Assembly (NCBI RefSeq): GCF_006345805.1 | Contig: NC_043002.1 | Span: forward strand, 115,196,001 to 115,260,000 | Length of the DNA stretch: 64,000 nucleotides | Reading direction: 5' to 3' | Source: Octopus sinensis | Lineage: Eukaryota | Shown: positions 5,561 to 47,989 of the stretch, in pieces | Layout: every line of letters starts with the position of its first letter | How positions within the stretch are numbered: position 1 is the first letter of the stretch | The notes under the pieces: generated by a model | The model's database searches: none | What the model was told of the DNA's origin: nothing | Seen by the model: the letters and a program-made list of their open reading frames with translations, nothing else | Translations under genes and position numbers: made by a program

Positions 5561-6109
5561 TCGTGACACATTATAGGTCCATTTTTAGCTTAGATTTTAG
5601 TCTTGTCACAATATCTGTTGTTAATTTCTTTTTATAAATATGTCATTTTAGACTGTTTTGTATTTGAGAGCTTACTTTAAAGCAAAAACAGAAGGGGATC
5701 GTTACTTGAAATTAGTGATAAAGTCCCCCATGAAGACTGGTTAAAATTAAAAAGCACACTTCCTTATACAAATAGTTGGGAAACCTCATATAAGAATGAT
5801 CAGGGCACCTTGATACAAATTACCATCTTTATTGTTGTACTTCTGTTTAAGCTGTTGTTGTTGCTGTTGTTGTTGTTGTTGTTGTTTGTTTGTTGTTTTT
5901 GTTAATGTTCTTGAATGTCAAATTGTTGTTCGTGCTTGTGTGTCCATTTGTTTTATTCATTGCCATTTTCTTCTGCTCATCTGTTATTATTATTCTTCCG
6001 CCTACACGAAAATTATTTTGCTTCAGGAGATGCACATCAAGCGCCACGCCCTTTCTGGCGAGCCCCTCTTTCTGTTCTTTTAATAGGGGAATTTGATGTA
6101 ATTTTCAAA

Positions 6110-7796
6110 AATATGTCTAAACAAGGCCTATTGCGCACCGTGAAAGCATTCAGCGATGACATCGGGATGGAGTTTGGACTTGAGAAGTGTGCCAAGGCCA
6201 CTTTCCAGAAAGGGAAAGTGAAGACCACAAATTCAGTCGTGTTAGATGTTGACACAGTCATAAGAGAGCTTGAGCAAGAACAAACATACAAATATTTAGG
6301 GATAAATGAAGGCTCTGGTATTCAGCATGCAAGCATGAAAGAGAAGATCAGGAAGGAATGTTATAGGAGAGTTCGTGCAGTCCTGAAATCTGAACTAAAT
6401 GCACGTAACAAGGTGTTAGCTATAAATTCCTTAGCAGTTCCAGTTGTTACTTATAGCTACAATGTGTTGAACTGGAATATGAGTGAAGTAAAGAATATAG
6501 ATAGGAAAATACGCAAGCTGCTGAGTTGTAATAGGATGCACCACCCAAAGGCAGACGTAGATCGCCTTTACCTTCCCAGAGACCAAGGAGGTCGAGGCCT
6601 GATCCAATTTGAACTAGCTTACAAAACAACCACAATTGGACTGGCCAAATATCTCGAAAATCGAATGACTGGATGCTAAAGCTCGTGGAAAATCACGAGA
6701 GACGAAAGAAGCTTCATTCTATCATAAAGGAAAGCAAAAAATTTGCTATTGATCTCGTGCAGGATACCCAAACTGAACAACCCGAGGGAAGTACGGCAAC
6801 TATTGTTGCAAAGAAGGTGAAAATGATGGCAATGAAAAAAGCGCACGAGCAATTGGCTGATAGGTGGGAGGAGAAACCTCTGCACGGCAAATATGTGACC
6901 CGCAGCAAACAAGCTGATGTTGACCAGAAGCAAACCAATCAGTGGCTACGGAGCTCAGGGCTAAAAGCAGAGAGCGAAGGTTTCATCCTGGCTGCTCAAG
7001 ATCAAAGCCTATTAACCCGGAACTACCAGGCCAATGTGATGAAAAATGGAGCAGACCCAAAATGCCGATTCTGCAACGACATGATTGAAACAGTGGACCA
7101 CCTAATCTCTGGATGTAAAGTCTTAGCACCAGTGGAGTATAAATTAAGACATGACAGAGTTGGCCAATATCTCCACTGGCTAATAAGTCGGCATTACAAT
7201 ATCAAAACTGCCGACAAGTGGTATAATCACCACCCTGAGGCTGTAACTGAAGGAGAAAATGTAAGTCTGTGGGACTTTCCAGTACATACAGACCGAACCA
7301 TCAAGGCCATTAAACCAGATATTGTTGTGAAAGACCAAAACAATAAAGTTTGCTTATTGATCGACATGAGCATCCCCTGTGATCATAATATCTCAGCGAA
7401 AGAGTTTGACAAGCTCAGAAAATATAAAGACCTACTCATTGAAATTGAGAAAATGTGGCATCTCAAGGCGGTTACAATACCAGTGATCGTAGGAGCACTA
7501 GGAATGATCAAGAAGGGAACCGAAAATTATATGAGAATGATCCCTGGCTTACCATCCCTGCAAGAAGTGCAAAAGATTGTCTTAACTGGTACATCACATG
7601 TATTGAGAAGAGCATTGTCGATGTGAGAACTGTTGCTGCTCATGTATTTTAATTTAACTTTAAAAATTAAAAAAAAAATGAACGAACTATTGAGTTTGGT
7701 TTAATGGCCTACCAATGTATACTATGAGTTTCTTTTCCCTAGGAGTTGGGAAGACACTCGGCAAGAAATGGAAGCAAATTTGAAAGAAGAAAAAAA
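6110..7796 (+). mobile_element. 5'-truncated non-LTR retrotransposon, R4/Dong clade (RT C-terminus + CCHC + restriction-like endonuclease)
   Basis: FSDDIGMEFGLEKCA, YKYLG, LYLPRDQGGRGL, KPLHGKY, AAQDQSL, CRFC..ETVDHLISGC, RHD, KPDIVV..D, PVIVGALG. One frameshift near 6660. 3' UTR runs into (TAA)n. Confidence 0.92.
6673..7626 (+). pseudogene. R4/Dong ORF, C-terminal part (zinc knuckle + RLE endonuclease), 317 aa open frame
   Basis: ORF track. Continues the 5915-6679 frame after a frameshift (aat gac tgg atg = NDWM). Confidence 0.85.
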
Positions 7797-20911: not shown

Positions 20912-21455
20912 ATGCCTTCGATAGAAGAAAGTCCAAAAATGAATTTCGCTGCAGCCGTCGGCGAGCGCGAACACATTAAAATTAAAATGGAAGAAATGCA
21001 AACCTATTTCGGATTCACCTACAAAGACAGTGAATCTAGGATAACACCACCAAACAAAATGAAAAATTAAATTAAAGAAAAGACTATTGTCTATAAAGTA
21101 TACAATGTAGAGAAGAAAAAAAGATTTGAACACCTGGAGGAAAGCACCATCGAAAAGTATCTTGGTGCGACTATGAAAGATATCAAGTATCTAACCAGAG
21201 GCGGTAAATTCGCCACAACAGAAGCAAGGTTCGAGTCAACGGAGCGTGCAAAGGAGTACTCGACTCGAACCTTGCAAAGTGGAAATATTTTATTTTTACC
21301 TTTATATCTGGGACGTAGGACGTCCCGGATAAAAATTTAAAATGCCCCCTTTTCCCCAGAAGTAGAGGTAGGCTGGATTGTAGTCACACTTCTATACAAG
21401 AGGGAGGACAAGATACAATTGATCGACATTGCCAGAGACAGGCCTACAATTCCAT
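20912..21455 (+). pseudogene. LINE ORF1-like fragment (probably L1/Tx1-type, RRM-like)
   Basis: One frame with only isolated stops: MPSIEESPKMNFAAAVGE...KYLTRGGKFATTEARFESTERAKEYSTRTLQSGNILFLPLYLGRRTSRIKI. The family assignment is recollection, not a search. Confidence 0.45.
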
Positions 21456-24824: not shown

Positions 24825-24964
24825 CCTCCTTCTTTCCTTCTTTCCTGAGCGTCCAATAATACTATATTGTTCCACGTCCTCGCGTTGTGTGTGTTTTTTA
24901 TGCTTTCTTGTTTGGATTAACTTTATATATATATTATATAATATATATATAATTAAATATATAT

Positions 24965-25014
<50 letters not shown>

Positions 25015-25244
25015 TATAATAGAAATATTAAAATACTAAGTCTCTCTAAAAGAGAACAACGGCAGCGTTCCCGGAAAATATTAGTTATCGCCATACTATA
25101 TGGCATTCTATAAAAATAAGAAAAAAGCTGACCGCTTATTAGCTCCATGAGGCCATCGCCTTAAGTTAGCTATTTGATACACAAACTGTATCCATATAAC
25201 CTTTGAACAAGGGAGGTCAGTCGCTCCACACTACTTGGCCGGCA

Positions 25245-25286
25245 GCTACAGACGCGTTTCGGGGTATTGCCCCTTTTCAATGCAGC
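25245..25286 (-). ncRNA. Type I hammerhead ribozyme, U3-A8 variant (copy 1)
   Basis: Reverse complement reads GCTGCA TTGAAAA GGGG CAATA CCCC GAAA CGCG TC TGTAGC. Confidence 0.85.
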
Positions 25287-25604
25287 GTAGCCAAACCAGT
25301 AGGTGTCGCTTCCGACAATCTCTGTTCAAAGGTTTTATTTACCTAGCTTCGGTGGAATACATCCCTTGTTTTCATAATAGAAATATTAAAATTACTAAGT
25401 CTCTCTAAAAGAGAACAACGGCAGCGTTCCGGAAAATATTAGTTATCGCCATACTAATATGGCATTCTTATAAAAATAAGAAAAAAGCTGACCGCTTATT
25501 AGCTCCATGAGGCCATCGCCTTAAGTTAGCTATTTGATACACAAACTGTATCCATATAACCTTTGAACAAGGGAGGTCAGCCGCTCCACACTACTTGGCC
25601 GGCA

Positions 25605-25646
25605 GCTACAGACGCGTTTCGGGGTATTGCCCCTTTTCAATGCAGC
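25605..25646 (-). ncRNA. Type I hammerhead ribozyme, U3-A8 variant (copy 2)
   Basis: Identical motif to copy 1. Confidence 0.85.
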
Positions 25647-25962
25647 GTAGCCAAAACAGTAGGTGTCGCTTCCGACAATCTCTGTTCAAAGGTTTTATTT
25701 ACCTAGCTTCGGTGGAATACATCCACTTGTTTTCAATAATAGAAATATTAAAATACTAGTCTCTCTAAAAGAGAACAACGGCAGCGTTCCCGGAAAATAT
25801 TAGTTATCGCCATACTATATGGCATTCTATAAAAATAAGAAAAAAGCTGACCGCTTATTAGCTCCATGAGGCCATCGCCTTAAGTTAGCTATTTGATACA
25901 CAAACTGTATCCATATAACCTTTGAACAAGGAGGTCAGCCGCTCCACACTACTTGGCCGGCA

Positions 25963-26004
25963 GCTACAGACGCGTTTCGGGGTATTGCCCCTTTTCAATG
26001 CAGC
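25963..26004 (-). ncRNA. Type I hammerhead ribozyme, U3-A8 variant (copy 3)
   Basis: Identical motif to copy 1. Confidence 0.85.
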
Positions 26005-26229
26005 GTAGCCAAACCAGTAGGTGTCGCTTCCGACAATCTCTGTTCAAAGGTTTTATTTACCTAGCTTCGGTGGAATACATCCACTTGTTTTCAATAATAG
26101 AAATATTAAAATTACTAAGTCTCTCTAAAAGAGAACAACGGCAGCGTTCCCAGAAAATATTAGTTATCGCCATACTAATATGGCATTCTTATAAAAATAA
26201 GAAAAAAGCTGACCTACTGGTTTGGCTAC

Positions 26230-26271
26230 GCTGCATTGAAAAGGGGCAATACCCCGAAACGCGTCTGTAGC
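26230..26271 (+). ncRNA. Type I hammerhead ribozyme, U3-A8 variant (copy 4)
   Basis: GCTGCA TTGAAAA GGGG CAATA CCCC GAAA CGCG TC|TGTAGC; predicted cleavage after 26265. Confidence 0.85.
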
Positions 26272-26592
26272 TGCCGGCCATGTAGTGTGGAGCGACTGAC
26301 CTCCCTTGTTCAAAGGTTATATGGATACAGTTTGTGTATCAAATAGCTAACTTAAGGCGATGGCCTCATGGAGCTAATAAGCGGTCAGCTTTTTTCTTAT
26401 TTTTATAAGAATGCCATATTAGTATGGCGATAACTAATATTTTCCGGGAACGCTGCCGTTGTTCTCTTTTAGAGAGACTTAGTAATTTTAATATTTCTAT
26501 TATTGAAAACAAGTGGATGTATTCCACCGAAGCTAGGTAAATAAAACCTTTGAACAGAGATTGTCGGAAAGCGAACCTACTGGTTTGGCTAC

Positions 26593-26633
26593 GCTGCATT
26601 GAAAAGGGGCAATACCCCGAAAGCGTCTGTAGC
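26593..26633 (+). ncRNA. Type I hammerhead ribozyme, U3-A8 variant (copy 5, 1-nt deletion in stem III)
   Basis: GAAA GCG TC instead of GAAA CGCG TC; may be a sequencing error. Confidence 0.7.
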
Positions 26634-26953
26634 TGCCGGCCAAGTAGTGTGGGAGCGGACTGACCTCCCTTGTTCAAAGTTATATGGATACAGTTTGTGT
26701 ATCAAATAGCTAACTTAAGGCGATGGCCTCATGGAGCTAAAAGCGGTCAGCTTTTTTCTTATTTTTATAAGAATGCCATATTAGTATGGCGATAACTAAT
26801 ATTTTCCGGGAACGCTGCCGTTGTTCTCTTTTAGAGAGACTTAGTAATTTTAATATTTCTATTATTGAAAACAAGTGGATGTATTCCACCGAAGCTAGGT
26901 AAATAAAACCTTTGACAGAGATTGTCGGAAGCGACACCTACTGGTTTGGCTAC

Positions 26954-26995
26954 GCTGCATTGAAAAGGGGCAATACCCCGAAACGCGTCTGTAGC
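26954..26995 (+). ncRNA. Type I hammerhead ribozyme, U3-A8 variant (copy 6)
   Basis: Intact motif; predicted cleavage after 26989. Confidence 0.85.
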
Positions 26996-27316
26996 TGCCG
27001 GCCAAGTGTAGTGTGGAGCGACTGACCTCCCTTGTTCAAAGGTTATATGGATACAGTTTGTGTATCAAATAGCTAACTTAAGGCGATGGCCTCATGGAGC
27101 TAATAAGCGGTCAGCTTTTTTCTTATTTTTATAAGAATGCCATATTAGTATGGCGAAACTAATATTTTCCGGGAACGCTGCCGTTGTTCTCTTTTGAGAG
27201 GACTTAGTAATTTTAATATTTCTATTATTGAAAACAAGTGGATGTATTCCACCGAAGCTAGGTAAATAAAACCTTGAACAGAGATTGTCGGAAGCGACAC
27301 CTACTGGTTTGGCTAC

Positions 27317-27358
27317 GCTGCATTGAAAAGGGGCAATACCCCGAAACGCGTCTGTAGC
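27317..27358 (+). ncRNA. Type I hammerhead ribozyme, U3-A8 variant (copy 7)
   Basis: Intact motif; predicted cleavage after 27352. Confidence 0.85.
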
Positions 27359-27680
27359 TGCCGGCCAAGTAGTGTGGAGCGACTGACCTCCCTTGTTCAA
27401 AGGTTATATGGATACAGTTTGTGTATCAAATAGCTAACTTAAGGCGATGGCCTCATGGAGCTAATAAGCGGTCAGCTTTTTTCTTATTTTTATAAGAATG
27501 CCATATTAGTATGGCGATAACTAATATTTTCCGGGAACGCTGCCGTTGTTCTCTTTTAGAGAGACTTAGTAATTTTAATATTTCTATTATTGAAAACAAG
27601 TGGATGTATTCCACGACGAAGCTAGGAAATAAAACCTTTGAACAGAGATTGTCGAAAGCGACACCTACTGGTTTGGCTAC

Positions 27681-27722
27681 GCTGCATTGAAAAGGGGCAA
27701 TACCCCGAAACGCGTCTGTAGC
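27681..27722 (+). ncRNA. Type I hammerhead ribozyme, U3-A8 variant (copy 8)
   Basis: Intact motif; predicted cleavage after 27716. Confidence 0.85.
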
Positions 27723-28048
27723 TGCCGGCCAAGTAGTGTGGAGCGACTGACCTCCTTGTTCAAAGGTATATGGATACAGTTTGTGTATCAAATAGCTAAC
27801 TTAAGCGAGGCGATGGCCTCATGGGCTAATAAGCGGTCAGCTTTTTTCTTATTTTTATAAGAATGCCATATTAGTATGGTGATGCGATAACTTAATATTA
27901 TTCCGCGGAACGCTGCCGTTGTTCTTTTTAGAGAGACTTAGTAATTTTAATATTTCTATATTGAAACAAGGGATGTATTCCACCGAAGCTAGGTAAATAA
28001 AACCTTTGAACAGAGATTGTCGGAAGCGACACCTACTGGTTTGGCTAC

Positions 28049-28090
28049 GCTGCATTGAAAAGGGGCAATACCCCGAAACGCGTCTGTAGC
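28049..28090 (+). ncRNA. Type I hammerhead ribozyme, U3-A8 variant (copy 9)
   Basis: Intact core motif; predicted cleavage after 28084. Confidence 0.85.
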
Positions 28091-28261
28091 TCGGCCAAGT
28101 AGTGTGTGGAGCGACTGACCTCCCTTGTTCAAAGGTTATATGGATACAGTTTGTGTATCAAATAGCTAACTTAAGGCGATGGCCTCATGGAGCTAATAAG
28201 CGGTCAGCTTTTTCTTATTTTTATAAGAAAAGGAATTGCCATTAGTATGGCGATACTAATA

Positions 28262-28710
<449 letters not shown>

Positions 28711-35210: not shown

Positions 35211-36076
35211 ATATGCAGATTAGTTTTGCCCTTCTAAGGACTGGCTCGCAAAATTGCGAGTCTTCTTAGGGGTGTCAAATAGCAACCACACCGTTGCAAA
35301 CTTGACACCCCTGGCAATAAACTTAGTTGGCAGTTATTCTGCCAACTCTTTTTCTATTTCAATTCGAGGGAATACCGTAATGGTGTTGAGAGACTTACAA
35401 TAAGTTATCAATACCACGGTTCTATCATTGAAATTTTCCAATCACTGCCTTGAAGACACAATTTCCAAATCCAAAGCAGTATTTTTTGCCTTGCTTGCAG
35501 AAAAAGAAAATTAAATAGTTCAAAATAAACAGTCTAATACAGTCAAAAATTAATAAAAGAGCAGAAAGACAGCGCAGAGAAAAAGAAGGAAGGAACACAG
35601 CAAATGCTCTTTCGGCCTCTGGTAATCCTGGCCAACAGGTTTTCCAAAAATTGGTACTCCAATCAGGTACTCCAGGTCCAGAAGCGGGAGCACTGAGAAA
35701 ATCCTCCACGAATTGGTAGAAAATTTTATAAAATTTTCACAAACTTTTGTGGCGAGACACGCCCACCAAACAACACTTCTCACAATGAGAAACAATATTC
35801 ACTTAATGTGAACAGCCTTATCCCAACCGCAGGCAGACTAGAGTCCAGAATCCAGTGAGGACACCTTGCTTGTAAAAAAATTTACCTCAAACAACAAATC
35901 CCCACTGGACCCCAAAAAACAAAAGTTTAAACTTACAGCTGAGCTACTTTTTTCACTTGCTGTACAGCCGGCTATCTCCTTCAGCTACTTAGCACACAGC
36001 TACGCCTGCGCCTATATATATATATACATATATATATTATATATATATATATATATGTGTGTGTGGTGTGTGTGTG

Positions 36077-36107
<31 letters not shown>

Positions 36108-36125
36108 ATATTTTAATAAAAGGGA

Positions 36126-36179
<54 letters not shown>

Positions 36180-36249
36180 TACTACCAACAAATGACAAAT
36201 AAGGGCTACTTTACCATTCCATATTTCAGAGATAAGGAATTTTGTACAT

Positions 36250-36680
36250 TATTTATTTTATTTATATTGAACGGATATGTGTCCTCATCCTGCTTGTTGT
36301 TACCACAACATTTCGGCTGATTTACTCTCCAGCCTTCATCAGGTGACCTGGTAGAATTTTGAACCCAGCCCTGGGTTCTCATTCCTAAGGTATTTTGGGG
36401 TGATGTTATTATTATTATTACTACTACTACTACTACTATTACTATTTATTCAAGGCACTGCCTGGAATTGAACTCGCAATCTTAGAGTTAGTAGCCTGCG
36501 CTAATTATGCTATATAAAAGCATCAACAAATAAAAATACCTTACGAATGAGAACCCAGGATTGGGTTCAGAATTCTACCAGGACACCTGATGAAGGCTGG
36601 AAGTAAATCAGCCGAAACATTGTGGTAGCAACAAACAAGATGACGACACATATTCGTCCAACGTAAATAATGTAAATAAG
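36250..36680. repeat. Inverted-repeat element (pLTR-like arms) with outward-facing hammerhead-like motifs
   Basis: Arms ~36250-36395 and ~36535-36680. Motif cac CTGATGA A GGCTG..CAGCC GAAA (CA/TG) TT gtg at 36584-36624 (+) and 36304-36345 (-). Confidence 0.75.
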
Positions 36681-43489: not shown

Positions 43490-44870
43490 TTTATTTCAAA
43501 TTTTGGTACAAGGCCAGAAAGTTTAGTGGGGGGTAAGTCGATTATATCGACCACAGTGTTTAACTGGTACTTATTTTATTGACCCAGAATGGATGAAAGG
43601 CAAAGACAACCTCGTCAGAATTTGAACTCAAAGCATAAAGACAGGCGAAATACCTATTTCTTTACTACCCACAAGGGGCTAAACACAGAGGGAACAAACA
43701 AGAACAGACAAACTGATTAAGTCGATTACATCGACCCTAGTGCGTAGCTGGTACTTAATTTATCGAACCCGAAACGATGAAGGGCAAAGTCGACCTCGGC
43801 GGAATTTGAACTCACAACGTAACGGCAGACCAAATACCTATTTCTTTACTACCCACAAGGGGCTAAACACAGAGAGGACAAACAAGGACAGACGAACAGA
43901 TTAAGTCGATTATATCAACTCCAGTGCGTAACTGGTACTTATATATTCGACACCGAAAAAATGAAAGGCAAAGTCGGCCTCAGCGGAATTTGAACTCAGA
44001 ACGTAGCGGCAGACGAAATACTGCTAAGCATTTCGCCCGGCATGCTAACGTTTCTGCCAGCTAGCCGCCTTTAATCGTTTATTATAAATACCCGTGGCAG
44101 AAACGTTAGCACGCCGGGCGAAATGCGTAGCCGTATTTCGTCTGCTGTTACGTTCTGAGTTCAAATTCCGCCAAGGTTGACTTTGCCTTTCATCCTTTCG
44201 GGGTCGATAAATTAAGTACCAGTTACGCACTGGGGTTGATGTAATAGACTTTATCCGTTTGTCTGTCCTCATTTGTCCTCTCTGTGTTTAGCCCCTTGTG
44301 GGTAGTAAAGAAATAGGTATTTCGTCCGTCTTTACGTTCTGAGTTCAAAATCTGCCGAGGTCGACTTTGCTTCTCATCCTTTCGGGGTTGCGTACTGGAG
44401 TCGATCTAATTGACTGGCCCCCTCCCTATAAAAATTTTAGGCCTTCTACTGAGAGTAGAAAAGATTATTTTAAGGCGGCGAGCTGGCAGAAACGTTAGCG
44501 CACCGGGCGAAATGCTTAGCAGTATTTGATCTGCCGTTACGTTCTGAGTTCAAATTCCGCCGTGGTCGACTTTGCCTTTCATCCTTTGGGGGTCGATAAA
44601 TTAAGTACCATTTACGCACTGGGGTCGATATAATCGACTTAATCCGTTTGCCTGTCCTTGCTTGTCCCTTCCATGTTTAGCCCCTTGTGGGCAATAAAGA
44701 AATAAGAAACGTTAGCACGCCGGGCGAAATGCTTAGCAGTATTTCGTCTATCTTTATGCTCTGAGTTCAAATTCCGCCGATAAAATAAGTACCAATTGAA
44801 AACTGGGGGTCGATATAATAAACTACTTTGAAATATCTGGCCTTTTGCCAAACTTTGAAACTATTATTAA
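43490..44870. mobile_element. Cluster of family C SINEs, minus copies (43490-44070) facing plus copies (44095-44870)
   Basis: Repeated head/core sequences in both orientations. Confidence 0.85.
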
Positions 44871-46130: not shown

Positions 46131-46372
46131 GTCTTATATACCGCTGGTACAATAGCCTTTACTAAAGCGATGAGCTGGCAGAATCGTTATCACGCAGGGC
46201 AAAATGCTTAGCAGCATTTCATCCGTCTTTACGCTTTGAGTTCAAACCTTCTATCCTTTAGGGCTCCATAAAATAAGTACCAGTCGACTCTTGGTGTCGA
46301 TATAATCGACTTACTCCTCACCGGAAATTGCTGGCTTTGTGTCAAAATTTGAAACAAATATAATAGCCTTTA

Positions 46373-46472
46373 NNNNNNNNNNNNNNNNNNNNNNNNNNNN
46401 NNNNNNNNNNNNNNNNNNNNNNNNNNNNNNNNNNNNNNNNNNNNNNNNNNNNNNNNNNNNNNNNNNNNNNNN
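46373..46472. other. Assembly gap (100 N)
   Basis: Direct reading. Confidence 1.
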
Positions 46473-47286
46473 ATCATTCATGACCATTTGCATATGCAAA
46501 AGGTGTCTGTCAGATGGATTCCCAGGTTGCTCACGCCTTTCCAGAAGCAAGAACGCGTCGAGTGCTCGAGGGTGAATTTGGAGATGTGCCAAGAAGATGA
46601 GTCAAAATTTTTTAAAAGACTGATTACACAGGATGAAACCTGGGTCCATCACGATGATCCAGAGACCAAAGCCCAGTCAATGCAGTGGAAGCACTGTGAC
46701 TCACCTCCTCCAAAGAAGGCAAGGGTGCAGCCCTCCGCTGGCAAGGTCATGCTCACAGTCATCTGGGACCAGGACGGAGTAGTGATGACAGATTTCCTGG
46801 CAAAGGGTACCACAATTGCAGGAGCCTATTATGCTTCACTTTTGAGGAAATTAAGAGAAGCTATCAAAATCAAGAGGCGGGGCAAGATCAGAAAAGGCAT
46901 CCTCCTCCTGCAGGACAACGCTCCGGTCCACAACTCGCTTGTCGCCAGATCAGAAGCACAGGCGTATGGCTATGAACTCCTCCCCCATCCCCCCTACTTT
47001 CCTGACCTTGCACCCTCTGATTTTCACCTCTTCCCAGTCATGAAGTTGTTTTTGAAAGGAAAGCGTGTCCCAGATGATGCAGCCTTGATTTCTGAAGTCG
47101 CGTTCAGGTTGGAGGACCAAGCTAGGGTCTTCTACAAAAACGGTCTCCAGAGCTGCATCAAACAATGGGAGAAATGCGTAACTCTGGGTGGCTGCTATGT
47201 AGAAAAAGACTTATATCTGTGCCAAGTTTCGTTGCTCTACTGCTATGGGAAGTGGGTCAGGGGCATTACTTATTGAACGCCCCTCG

Positions 47287-47339: not shown

Positions 47340-47989
47340 CATGTATGTAGGTAAATGGATATGAATGTAAACAGATAGACATACAGATGGATAGGTACAC
47401 AGGTAATATGAACAGACAAGCATGCATACACTTACACATACACAAATGAAGACGGAAACACGTGACCATATAGACACACATTTCACTTTACACAAGGACA
47501 CATATGGAGACACACATCCATACATCTATACATACAGACATAGTACAGAGATACAAAAAATCCCATACACACACACACACACAGACATGAACTCACACAC
47601 AGACAGAAATACACACACACACACACATGAATATGCAGAATACATACATGCAAACTTACACACATACATATATAATACGCACATACGCACACATACACAT
47701 ACATACATGTATACACATACATGCATGCACACATACATATATACATACATATATACATACATACATACATACATACATGTGTATGCGCGCGCACACTGAT
47801 CCACACACATGCGCACAAACAAAAAAACGCTGCTCGGATAACGGACAGAGTCAACGACTATTGAAAAGGTTGCAAGACGCAACGAAAATTTTAGGACAAT
47901 AAATAAATGAGTGGAAACTTTACCGGTGAGTGTGTTAAATAATAAGGCGCCAAAAGAGAATAACTCTCCCCAGACACAACAAACTAATA

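Follow-up and report, generated by a model that had tools for sequence, protein, structure and literature searches.

The subject of this analysis is a tandem repeat in the genome of Octopus sinensis, located within a 64,000-nt stretch of contig NC_043002.1 (RefSeq assembly GCF_006345805.1, positions 115,196,001 to 115,260,000 of the forward strand), which is called the window below. At window positions 25016-28261 there are 8.9 copies of a non-coding 363-bp unit with nine hammerhead ribozyme motifs, eight of them identical and one with a 1-nt deletion. As a whole, the array is best explained as the insertion of a retrozyme from a young, high-copy, non-autonomous family copied by the Penelope-like element (PLE) reverse transcriptase (RT), a reading to which a probability of about 0.7 is given. 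The initial annotation of this DNA, made from its letters, had proposed a retrozyme-like system, and this proposal is supported by the unit, the motif, the genomic spread, the termini, the covariation and the RNA fold.

Two adjoining arrays were delimited by Tandem Repeats Finder (TRF), one at 25016-26214 with a period of 360 (3.3 copies, 97% matches) and the other at 26212-28229 with a period of 363 (5.6 copies, 96% matches), and in an inverted-repeat search they are mutually reverse-complementary at 98-100%. The count of about nine non-coding units of about 360 bp in the initial annotation is borne out by the TRF copy number and the nine motifs, but its single tandem array turned out to be two head-to-head arms of 3.3 minus-strand and 5.65 plus-strand units. 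The arms are oppositely oriented, and their 5' ends meet at 26212-26214, where they overlap by 3 nt; both flanks are (TA)n, and there TA/AT dinucleotides make up 85% of the 100 nt outside the element on the left and 91% on the right. In terms of the family consensus described below, arm A has its outer terminus at position 238 (…TTTCTATTAT, which reads ATAATAGAAA at 25016-25025) and its inner 5' end at 118, and arm B starts at position 310 and has its outer terminus at about 175 (…GGCGATACTAATA). The 30-mer TTGAAAAGGGGCAATACCCCGAAACGCGTC matches exactly eight times in the window (three on the minus and five on the plus strand), against none in 100 dinucleotide shuffles, and the ninth motif copy, on the plus strand at 26593-26633, misses one C from helix III (GAAAGCGTC). 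Relative to the consensus, the window units carry 5 substitutions and 44 indel positions, which suggests long-read assembly error, so that the defect of the ninth motif may be an assembly artefact. One shared transcript spans only the six plus-strand motifs, the remaining three being on the minus strand; the cut sites of these six (Table 1) and the monomers of 362-368 nt between them agree exactly with those first predicted.

The unit is dispersed through the genome (2.72 Gb, 13,516 contigs), where full-length matches at 96-100% are present on most large contigs. An exact 25-mer has 1,232 genomic matches, and the pattern GCTGCAYTGANRAN{12,16}GAAANNNNTC recovers no fewer than 1,865 motifs, distributed over every large contig, the reversed control giving 0 in both cases. 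A 363-nt consensus was built from 62 monomers taken from cut site to cut site, and members diverge from it by a mean of 0.44% in substitutions. The unit of 363 bp has 41% G+C, and each reading frame is interrupted within a unit; in the concatenated consensus the longest stop-free stretch is 51 aa on the plus strand and 111 aa on the minus strand. A tRNA-like part was searched for in the unit and none was found, and a scan of metagenome and viral contig collections for the family gave 0 matches. Judged by its sequence, the family is young, high-copy, dispersed and non-autonomous.

Metazoan retrozymes without long terminal repeats (non-LTR retrozymes) are recognised by tandem type I hammerhead units of ~150-450 bp, of low G+C and without an open reading frame (ORF), LTR, primer-binding site or polypurine tract, and by multi-copy dispersal with signs of retrotransposition. 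All of these are found here, the last as fixed 3' termini and a microsatellite target, and the octopus family is accordingly classed, from the features of its unit, as a new cephalopod-type member of this group. The suspicion voiced at the outset that such a family had not been described in cephalopods also stands, as no literature linking hammerheads or retrozymes to octopus, squid or cephalopods was found in the library searched, and ribozymes are unmentioned in a 2026 repeat annotation of Octopus vulgaris.

The hammerhead motif and its covariation

The single motif of each unit is a type I hammerhead, in which stem I (6 bp) is followed by a UAC/U internal loop and a distal helix, stem II is GGGG/CCCC with the loop CAAUA, and the cleavage triplet is GUC. 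The core reads UUGAAAA…GAAA, compared to the canonical CUGANGA, so that U3-A8 replaces C3-G8 and the Watson-Crick pairing between positions 3 and 8 is kept; the remaining core positions are canonical (A15.1-U16.1, GUC and the U1.1-A2.1 pair). Helix III consists of one A-U pair around the palindrome CGCG, whose closure within one molecule is impossible, and two motifs are needed. In the unconstrained minimum-free-energy fold of a 78-nt segment, stem I (6 bp, UAC/U and distal helix) and stem II both form, and the co-fold of two segments yields a 6-bp ACGCGU/ACGCGU helix III at -61.7 kcal/mol, compared to 2 x -27.8 (-55.6) kcal/mol as monomers. Stems I and II and the GUC triplet of the fold drawn in the initial annotation are retained, but its helix III within a single motif is not, as this helix forms between motifs only. 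Because helix III cannot form in the monomer, the cleavage of a single unit should be poor, and its constantly palindromic sequence implies dimeric cleavage. Folded as a circle, the monomer reaches -117.7 kcal/mol (z = -6.5 relative to shuffles). Both peculiarities of the motif have precedents, since U3-A8 has been reported as a natural covariation in the PLE hammerheads of Schistosoma (PMC4209133), and a one-pair helix III with a palindromic tetraloop, acting as a dimer, is the design of amphibian retrozymes (PMC7229834).

Variation among copies was read from the first 100 unselected genomic matches, using a search pattern that also permitted C3 or G8. U3 occurs together with A8 in all 100, and N7, the sole core position left free by the hammerhead consensus, shows all four bases (A 57, U 37, G 5, C 1). 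The pair 10.1-11.1 is G-C in 56 matches, A-U in 37, G-U in 6 and unpaired in 1, and the helix III hexamer is ACGCGU in 57, ACAUGU in 36, ACGUGU in 3 and another sequence in 4, with its self-complementarity preserved via a wobble intermediate. Among eight subfamily variants, which were hand-picked and whose choice leans in favour of the result, the cells of stems II and III were 100% paired, compared to 30-52% with a slid partner.

A sister subfamily with N7 = U counts 394 motifs genome-wide, with 0 for the reversed control. Between the main unit and the sister unit (81% identity), six pairs are changed on both sides and all six are still paired, including stem II and two pairs in the distal part of stem I, the latter changing from C-G to U-A and from U-A to C-G. 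These subfamily changes support the predicted stems I and II as well as the dimeric helix III. The best-conserved blocks between the two subfamilies, which are 82% identical overall, are 203-263 (97%), containing terminus 238, and 148-175 (89%), containing terminus 175, with 306-340 (92%), the 5' half of the ribozyme, as a third one; in the representative monomer of Table 1, consensus 148-175 corresponds to about window 27137-27164 and consensus 203-263 to about window 27192-27252. Such a distribution fits two putative RT-entry elements plus the ribozyme. Considering the invariance of the core together with the compensated stems, we take the motif as a real hammerhead under selection, and its catalytic activity with a U3-A8 core is likely.

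One copy of the sister retrozyme was seen at L073:6741-7294 on the minus strand, 81% identical, with A-U at 10.1-11.1 and ACAUGU as helix III; its 3' terminus is also …TTTCTATTAT, in a microsatellite. Further variants carry N7 = G or C.

Insertion scars and the copying enzyme

The window locus and further loci (20 fetched) were mapped with the 363-nt consensus; 23 loci were examined, and termini were scored in the 19 where both outer ends were in hand. A minus arm followed by a plus arm is present in 21 of the 23. One outer terminus lies at unit position 238 (…TTTCTATTAT) in all 19 scored loci, and the other at 174-178 (…GGCGATAACTAATAT) in 17 and at 166 or 125 in two, with no locus ending 238/238 or 175/175 (0/19). 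Nearly all outer termini adjoin (TA)n. Meanwhile, the inner 5' ends are ragged, most overlaps being of 1-20 nt and some joins having filler, and the flanks of different loci are unrelated. Fixed 3' termini, variable 5' truncation, joins at microhomology and unrelated flanks are characteristic of target-primed reverse transcription that starts on either side of a break. Moreover, each full unit spans the cut site, and so the template would have been an uncleaved multimer or a circle.

Some further details of the arms were noticed. Of the arm 5' ends, 7/46 lie at unit 324-331, just 5' of the ribozyme, and 14/46 within 310-363; the 324-331 cluster may mark a place where transcription starts, where the RT halts or where template switching is frequent. 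Five arm 5' ends that seemed to fall at the cut site were rejected, as the apparent gaps are short continuations of the previous unit and the true ends are at 345-363. Loci L021 and L024 have a common inner junction (277/202) with different flanks and unit numbers, and at L029:2995-3928 a short head-to-head module is tandemly repeated with a period of ~502 bp. The shared junction, the repeated module and two palindromic loci mentioned below might stem from the re-copying of junctions, from snap-back synthesis or from artefacts of long reads. Finally, a non-coding head-to-head element at L074:5764-6875, with arms 99% complementary, lies in (TA)n just downstream of a PLE and contains GGGAAACAUGU-type sequence; it may represent a further PLE-dependent family.

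As described by Frangieh et al., a purified PLE protein, PAc, cleaves and extends both DNA strands, prefers AT-rich DNA and begins its reverse transcription from two neighbouring sites within the RNA, the interval between them being the genomic 'tail' (PMC11167929). The tandem, inverted and tail structure was called PLE-specific by Craig et al., who also reported (TA)n targets (PMC8557442). The retrozyme loci display this insertion signature, with opposed arms, two termini and a (TA)n target, and by analogy the insertion scars point to Penelope-like RTs as the copying enzyme.

Possible donors of such an enzyme are resident in the genome. Candidates for a GIY-YIG endonuclease number in the thousands (4,846 at first look), and among their copies are intact ORFs of 781 aa that carry an RT domain and, C-terminally, a GIY-YIG domain, as canonical PLEs do. 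In one resident PLE family, 11 copies have a common ~980-nt 3' region and end at …ACAAATA/(TA)n or 33 nt further, again followed by (TA)n, this 33-nt interval being the PLE 'tail'. The same family keeps UUGAUAA-GGUUC…GAACY-GAAACAUGU ~70 nt from its end, and in this motif both the U3-A8 core and helix III are those of the sister retrozyme. In the 34 PLE loci sampled, the unit showed no homology to the pseudo-LTR (pLTR) or terminus of a resident PLE, and what is shared, with one PLE family, is the ribozyme elements UUGAUAA…GAAACAUGU only.

Hammerhead-like motifs were also seen elsewhere in the window. At 36249-36679, beside (TA)n at 36013-36174, there is an older head-to-head pair of canonical PLE-type mini-hammerheads with arms 84-85% complementary, one motif per strand and ~245 bp apart, each with CUGAUGA, a bulged A, stem II GGCUGG/UCAGCC and GAAAC; Rfam is silent on this pair at gathering score. 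At 47861, on the plus strand, a lone UUGAAAA-G-GUUGC…GCAAC-GAAA motif has a U3-A8 core, a bulged base and a 5-bp stem II, and it could be a chance occurrence or a further PLE-type mini-hammerhead.

In the proposed mechanism, paired (double) hammerheads would cut multimeric plus-strand transcripts, releasing 363-nt monomers whose ends are a 5'-OH and a 2',3'-cyclic phosphate, and a tRNA ligase of the RtcB type could close these monomers into structured circles. A PLE RT/GIY-YIG endonuclease would then cut an AT-rich target and extend both DNA strands on the retrozyme RNA, beginning inside it at 238 and at 175, and the 63-nt stretch that separates these sites would correspond to a PLE-type 'tail'. 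The RT would pass through several units of its template, either an uncleaved multimer or a circle, and the two cDNAs would be joined in the middle. Self-cleavage and a circular RNA of the octopus unit are steps that we infer from the motif and the fold.

Several observations weigh against this reading. The Rfam hammerhead models gave zero matches, at gathering score or E<=10, in the 64-kb window, a 3.5-kb region and a 71-nt stretch; the check with these models proposed in the initial annotation thus leaves the U3-A8 motif unscored, because the core reads UUGAAAA and not CUGANGA, with C3 and G8 both changed. Elsewhere in the genome RF00163 places eight canonical CUGANGA hammerheads above threshold, and two other matches of the Rfam scan, RT-2 and DUF3577, are chance only. 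Cleavage by PLE-type hammerheads is poor in vitro (PMC4209133), and the RNA that PAc uses in vitro is unprocessed (PMC11167929). None of the 46 arm 5' ends is exactly at the cut site, which leaves no genomic footprint of cleavage, and genomic copies do not demand circles, since uncleaved multimers yield identical arrays. Regarding the PLE partner, blastn of the consensus against 34 sampled PLE loci, a small sample relative to the 4,846 GIY-YIG candidates, returned AT-rich chance matches and one neighbouring sister retrozyme. The retrozyme tail is of 63 nt, compared to 30-40 nt for PLEs, and the PAc data, in which both strands had the same start sites, do not predict the strict use of one terminus of each kind. 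In addition, loci L011 and L032 are perfect palindromes (38/38 and 226/226, respectively) and as such possible long-read assembly artefacts.

The embedded LINE and other explanations of the family

In a subset of units, unit position 321/293 is occupied by a long interspersed nuclear element (LINE) of 5.3 kb, which has APE endonuclease and RT domains and is flanked by a 29-nt direct repeat. Genome-wide, its 5' junction was counted 32 times as an exact match and its 3' junction 35 times when 2 mismatches or fewer were allowed, almost all of them in pairs at a spacing of 5.34-5.40 kb and spread over many chromosomes. Some composites stand in tandem arrays, which repeat every 5.72 kb where LINE and unit alternate, or every 5.35-5.38 kb where only the 29 nt lie between successive LINEs. 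Full examination covered two composite loci, L075:2348-7684 (G000 C1:139.26 Mb) and L016/L017 (C8:11.14 Mb), and both have identical junctions and 175/238 termini in (TA)n, with differing flanks and arm structures. Among the composites the RT copies agree at 97-100%, ORF2 is open in two of them (over 1,140 and 1,089 aa), and stand-alone LINEs reach at best ~85% protein identity; as 91 of 52,086 RT candidates were scored, a LINE lineage found only in composites is weakly based. In the window itself, a weak match to ORF1 of the composite LINE was seen at 20936-21415.

Independent LINE insertions leave ragged and mostly truncated 5' ends, and repeated site-specific insertion is therefore judged unlikely, as 32/32 of the 5' junctions are letter-identical and ~90% of the copies full length. 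Identical junctions and near-universal full length instead indicate a single LINE insertion that was later amplified as cargo, and they argue for a LINE embedded in some units and co-amplified with the retrozyme. That the 5.7-kb composite is a functioning autonomous element, with the LINE inside a ribozyme-delimited unit and possibly serving as an RT source for the family, is doubtful; if true, both a protein-coding 'autonomous retrozyme' and a LINE processed by a hammerhead would be seen for the first time.

Taken one step further, this LINE and not a PLE could mobilise the family, the composite being the master and the 363-nt units its deletion derivatives copied in trans, an explanation that we consider unlikely. 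Paired, letter-identical junctions (32-35 full-length copies) across many chromosomes agree with it, and the 29-nt flanking repeat could mediate the deletion giving the 363-nt unit, but the same duplication resembles the target-site duplication that a LINE ordinarily leaves, here on inserting once into a unit already present, and LINE-free units stand to composites at ~50 to 1. The similarity of the composite RTs, with two open ORF2 frames and stand-alone LINEs that are only ~85% identical, would suit an active master, although the exclusivity of this lineage to composites leans on the small scored sample given above, and the sister subfamily with its 394 motifs was not seen with the LINE. Regarding the termini, 175 and 238 are kept in (TA)n in both fully examined composites despite different flanks and arms, and twin priming with inversion, documented for LINE-1, also counts for LINE copying. 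The integration starts 238/175 nevertheless lie ~310 nt past the LINE 3' end (…ATAATCATAATAA), unlike the template choice of a LINE RT, and a two-start tail with extension of both strands has been reported as unique to PLEs and unseen in target-primed reverse transcription by non-LTR elements (PMC8557442, PMC11167929). A short interspersed nuclear element with a LINE partner, for which a 3' end in common with that LINE and an internal pol III promoter of tRNA, 5S or 7SL origin would be expected, was rejected, as the termini …TTTCTATTAT and …AACTAATAT are unlike the LINE 3' end …ATAATCATAATAA and the tRNA-like part is absent.

The hammerhead could also be a dead relic from a PLE terminus, the units being satellite-like and the U3-A8 core and one-pair helix III abolishing cleavage, which appears improbable. 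The silence of the Rfam models, the helix III that cannot form within one motif and the low in vitro activity of PLE mini-hammerheads (PMC4209133) all agree with a dead motif. However, amphibian motifs of the same design cleave as dimers (PMC7229834), and a core that is invariant in at least five subfamilies, while the free N7 takes all four bases, is not expected of a relic; the same applies to the compensating changes in stem II and the helix III palindrome, to a single C3 or G8 change in 0/100 unselected copies and to the presence of the ribozyme 5' half among the three best-conserved blocks between subfamilies. Hammerhead cleavage was dispensable for PLE insertion in vitro, and the PAc cut site showed no RNA-seq ends (PMC11167929), which together with the 0/46 arm ends at the cut site remain on the side of the relic.

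Lastly, spread at the DNA level by segmental duplication, unequal crossing-over or circle reinsertion, or a head-to-head form produced by long-read assembly, is very improbable. The common inner junction of L021 and L024, the repeated module of L029, the palindromes of L011 and L032, LINE arrays with just 29 nt between copies and the many assembly indel errors can be listed for it, but most junctions are unique and asymmetric, with microhomology or filler and variable 5' truncation, and missed-adapter artefacts give symmetric palindromes, which here are 2/21. Moreover, two fixed outer termini with unrelated flanks and nearly always (TA)n are the signature of target-primed reverse transcription. 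Copying of the retrozyme by a PLE RT is kept as the preferred reading.

Coordinates, significance and comparison with known systems

Table 1. Positions of the retrozyme insertion and its parts in the window (strand given as a dot where none applies).
Feature	Window positions	Strand	Basis
Left-flanking (TA)n microsatellite, one half of the target	24924..25015	.	TRF row 24924-25018, period 2
Arm A, 3.3 units	25016..26214	-	Consensus BLAST, TRF, sequence
Hammerhead motif, 42 nt from GCUGCA to UGUAGC, C17 opposite 25251	25245..25286	-	Exact match
Hammerhead motif, C17 opposite 25611	25605..25646	-	Exact match
Hammerhead motif, C17 opposite 25969	25963..26004	-	Exact match
Head-to-head arm junction, 3-nt overlap ACC as microhomology	26212..26214	.	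Arm A end 26214, arm B start 26212
Arm B, 5.65 units	26212..28261	+	TRF, consensus BLAST
Hammerhead motif, predicted cut after 26265	26230..26271	+	Exact match
Hammerhead motif, helix III with 1-nt deletion (GAAAGCGUC), cut after 26627 if active	26593..26633	+	
Hammerhead motif, predicted cut after 26989	26954..26995	+	Exact match
Representative 363-nt monomer, cut site to cut site	26990..27352	+	Predicted cut sites
Hammerhead motif, predicted cut after 27352	27317..27358	+	Exact match
Hammerhead motif, predicted cut after 27716	27681..27722	+	Exact match
Hammerhead motif, predicted cut after 28084	28049..28090	+	Exact match
Right-flanking (AT)n microsatellite, second half of the target	28262..28709	.	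TRF row 28259-28709

Other features of the window are a remnant of an RT C-terminal zinc finger at 5915-7626, a 184-bp tandem repeat of 2.7 copies at 43534-44021 and a remnant of a mariner-type transposase (Transposase_1, E = 1e-22) at 46353-47276; ARAGORN found zero tRNA genes in the window.

Retrozymes are a recently recognised source of abundant small circular RNAs in animals, and the present family would extend them to octopus. Searches that depend on Rfam or on CUGANGA overlook a family of ~1,900 copies through one compensated core pair. The loci also give an unusually clean genomic read-out of the copying, with opposed arms, two fixed start sites and (TA)n, which would tie retrozymes to the PLE machinery by the mechanics of insertion and not by sequence homology, in agreement with the in vitro PLE behaviour of 2024. 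What the family adds is thus the search-invisible U3-A8 core, the clean PLE-type scar and the putatively co-amplified LINE. If a transcript read through both arms (25016-28261), it might fold into ~1.2 kb of near-perfect double-stranded RNA, and such RNA could be a plausible substrate for small-RNA pathways or for A-to-I editing, the host animals being known for heavy RNA editing and for defence by Piwi-interacting RNAs.

Compared with metazoan non-LTR retrozymes such as the ~350-390-bp repeats of Mytilus galloprovincialis (Cervera & de la Peña 2020, PMC7229834), the octopus family has the same short, low-G+C type I units, and it resembles the mussel retrozymes also in its high copy number, its dispersal and a predicted compact and highly paired circular RNA, both hosts belonging to the same phylum. 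It differs from metazoan retrozymes in having U3-A8 and not C3-G8 in the core, from the described invertebrate ones in that these mostly have a more stable helix III, and from the retrozymes in the published accounts found in that its insertions are two inverted arms with fixed termini in (TA)n. Expression and circles have been shown for the mussel, coral and axolotl retrozymes, whereas the octopus family is known from genomic DNA. Regarding the ribozyme, a one-bp helix III with a palindromic tetraloop, a stem II of 4 bp and a stem I of 6 bp plus internal loop are shared with amphibian satellite 2 and the axolotl HHR_Amex1, a design in which single motifs are poor at cleavage and dimers efficient (PMC7229834, PMC4209133). 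The octopus co-fold predicts the same helix III in trans; the U3-A8 core pair is again different.

The isosteric U3-A8 swap and a palindromic helix III are found in the mini-hammerheads of the Schistosoma Cercyon PLEs (PMC4209133), which also occur as opposite-strand motif pairs a few hundred bp apart. Nevertheless, the Cercyon motifs are minimal, with a stem II of 7-8 bp, a bulged base, a short ill-defined stem I and heterogeneous sequence, whereas the octopus motif has canonical helix sizes and defined loops 1 and 2 and is nearly invariant over ~1,200 copies. As for the integration, extension of both strands, two RT starts with a tail, (TA)n, partial tandems and an inverted 5'-truncated copy are all as in PLEs (PMC11167929, PMC8557442); unlike these, the octopus unit is without an RT or endonuclease ORF, its tail is of 63 nt, and its termini are strictly one per arm. 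In contrast to the Xenopus retrozymes (bioRxiv 10.64898/2026.07.22.740005), it also lacks pLTR homology to the sampled PLEs.

The LTR retrozymes of plants are likewise non-autonomous, with a hammerhead-delimited RNA and a borrowed RT, and circularisation would be a further likeness. However, they have type III hammerheads in LTRs, a primer-binding site and polypurine tract, 4-bp target-site duplications, ~700 nt between ribozymes and high G+C, and they are mobilised by Ty3-type elements, none of which holds for the octopus family. The closest relatives of the octopus family are therefore the mussel retrozymes in size and phylum, the amphibian dimeric type in ribozyme design and the Schistosoma PLE variants in the core.

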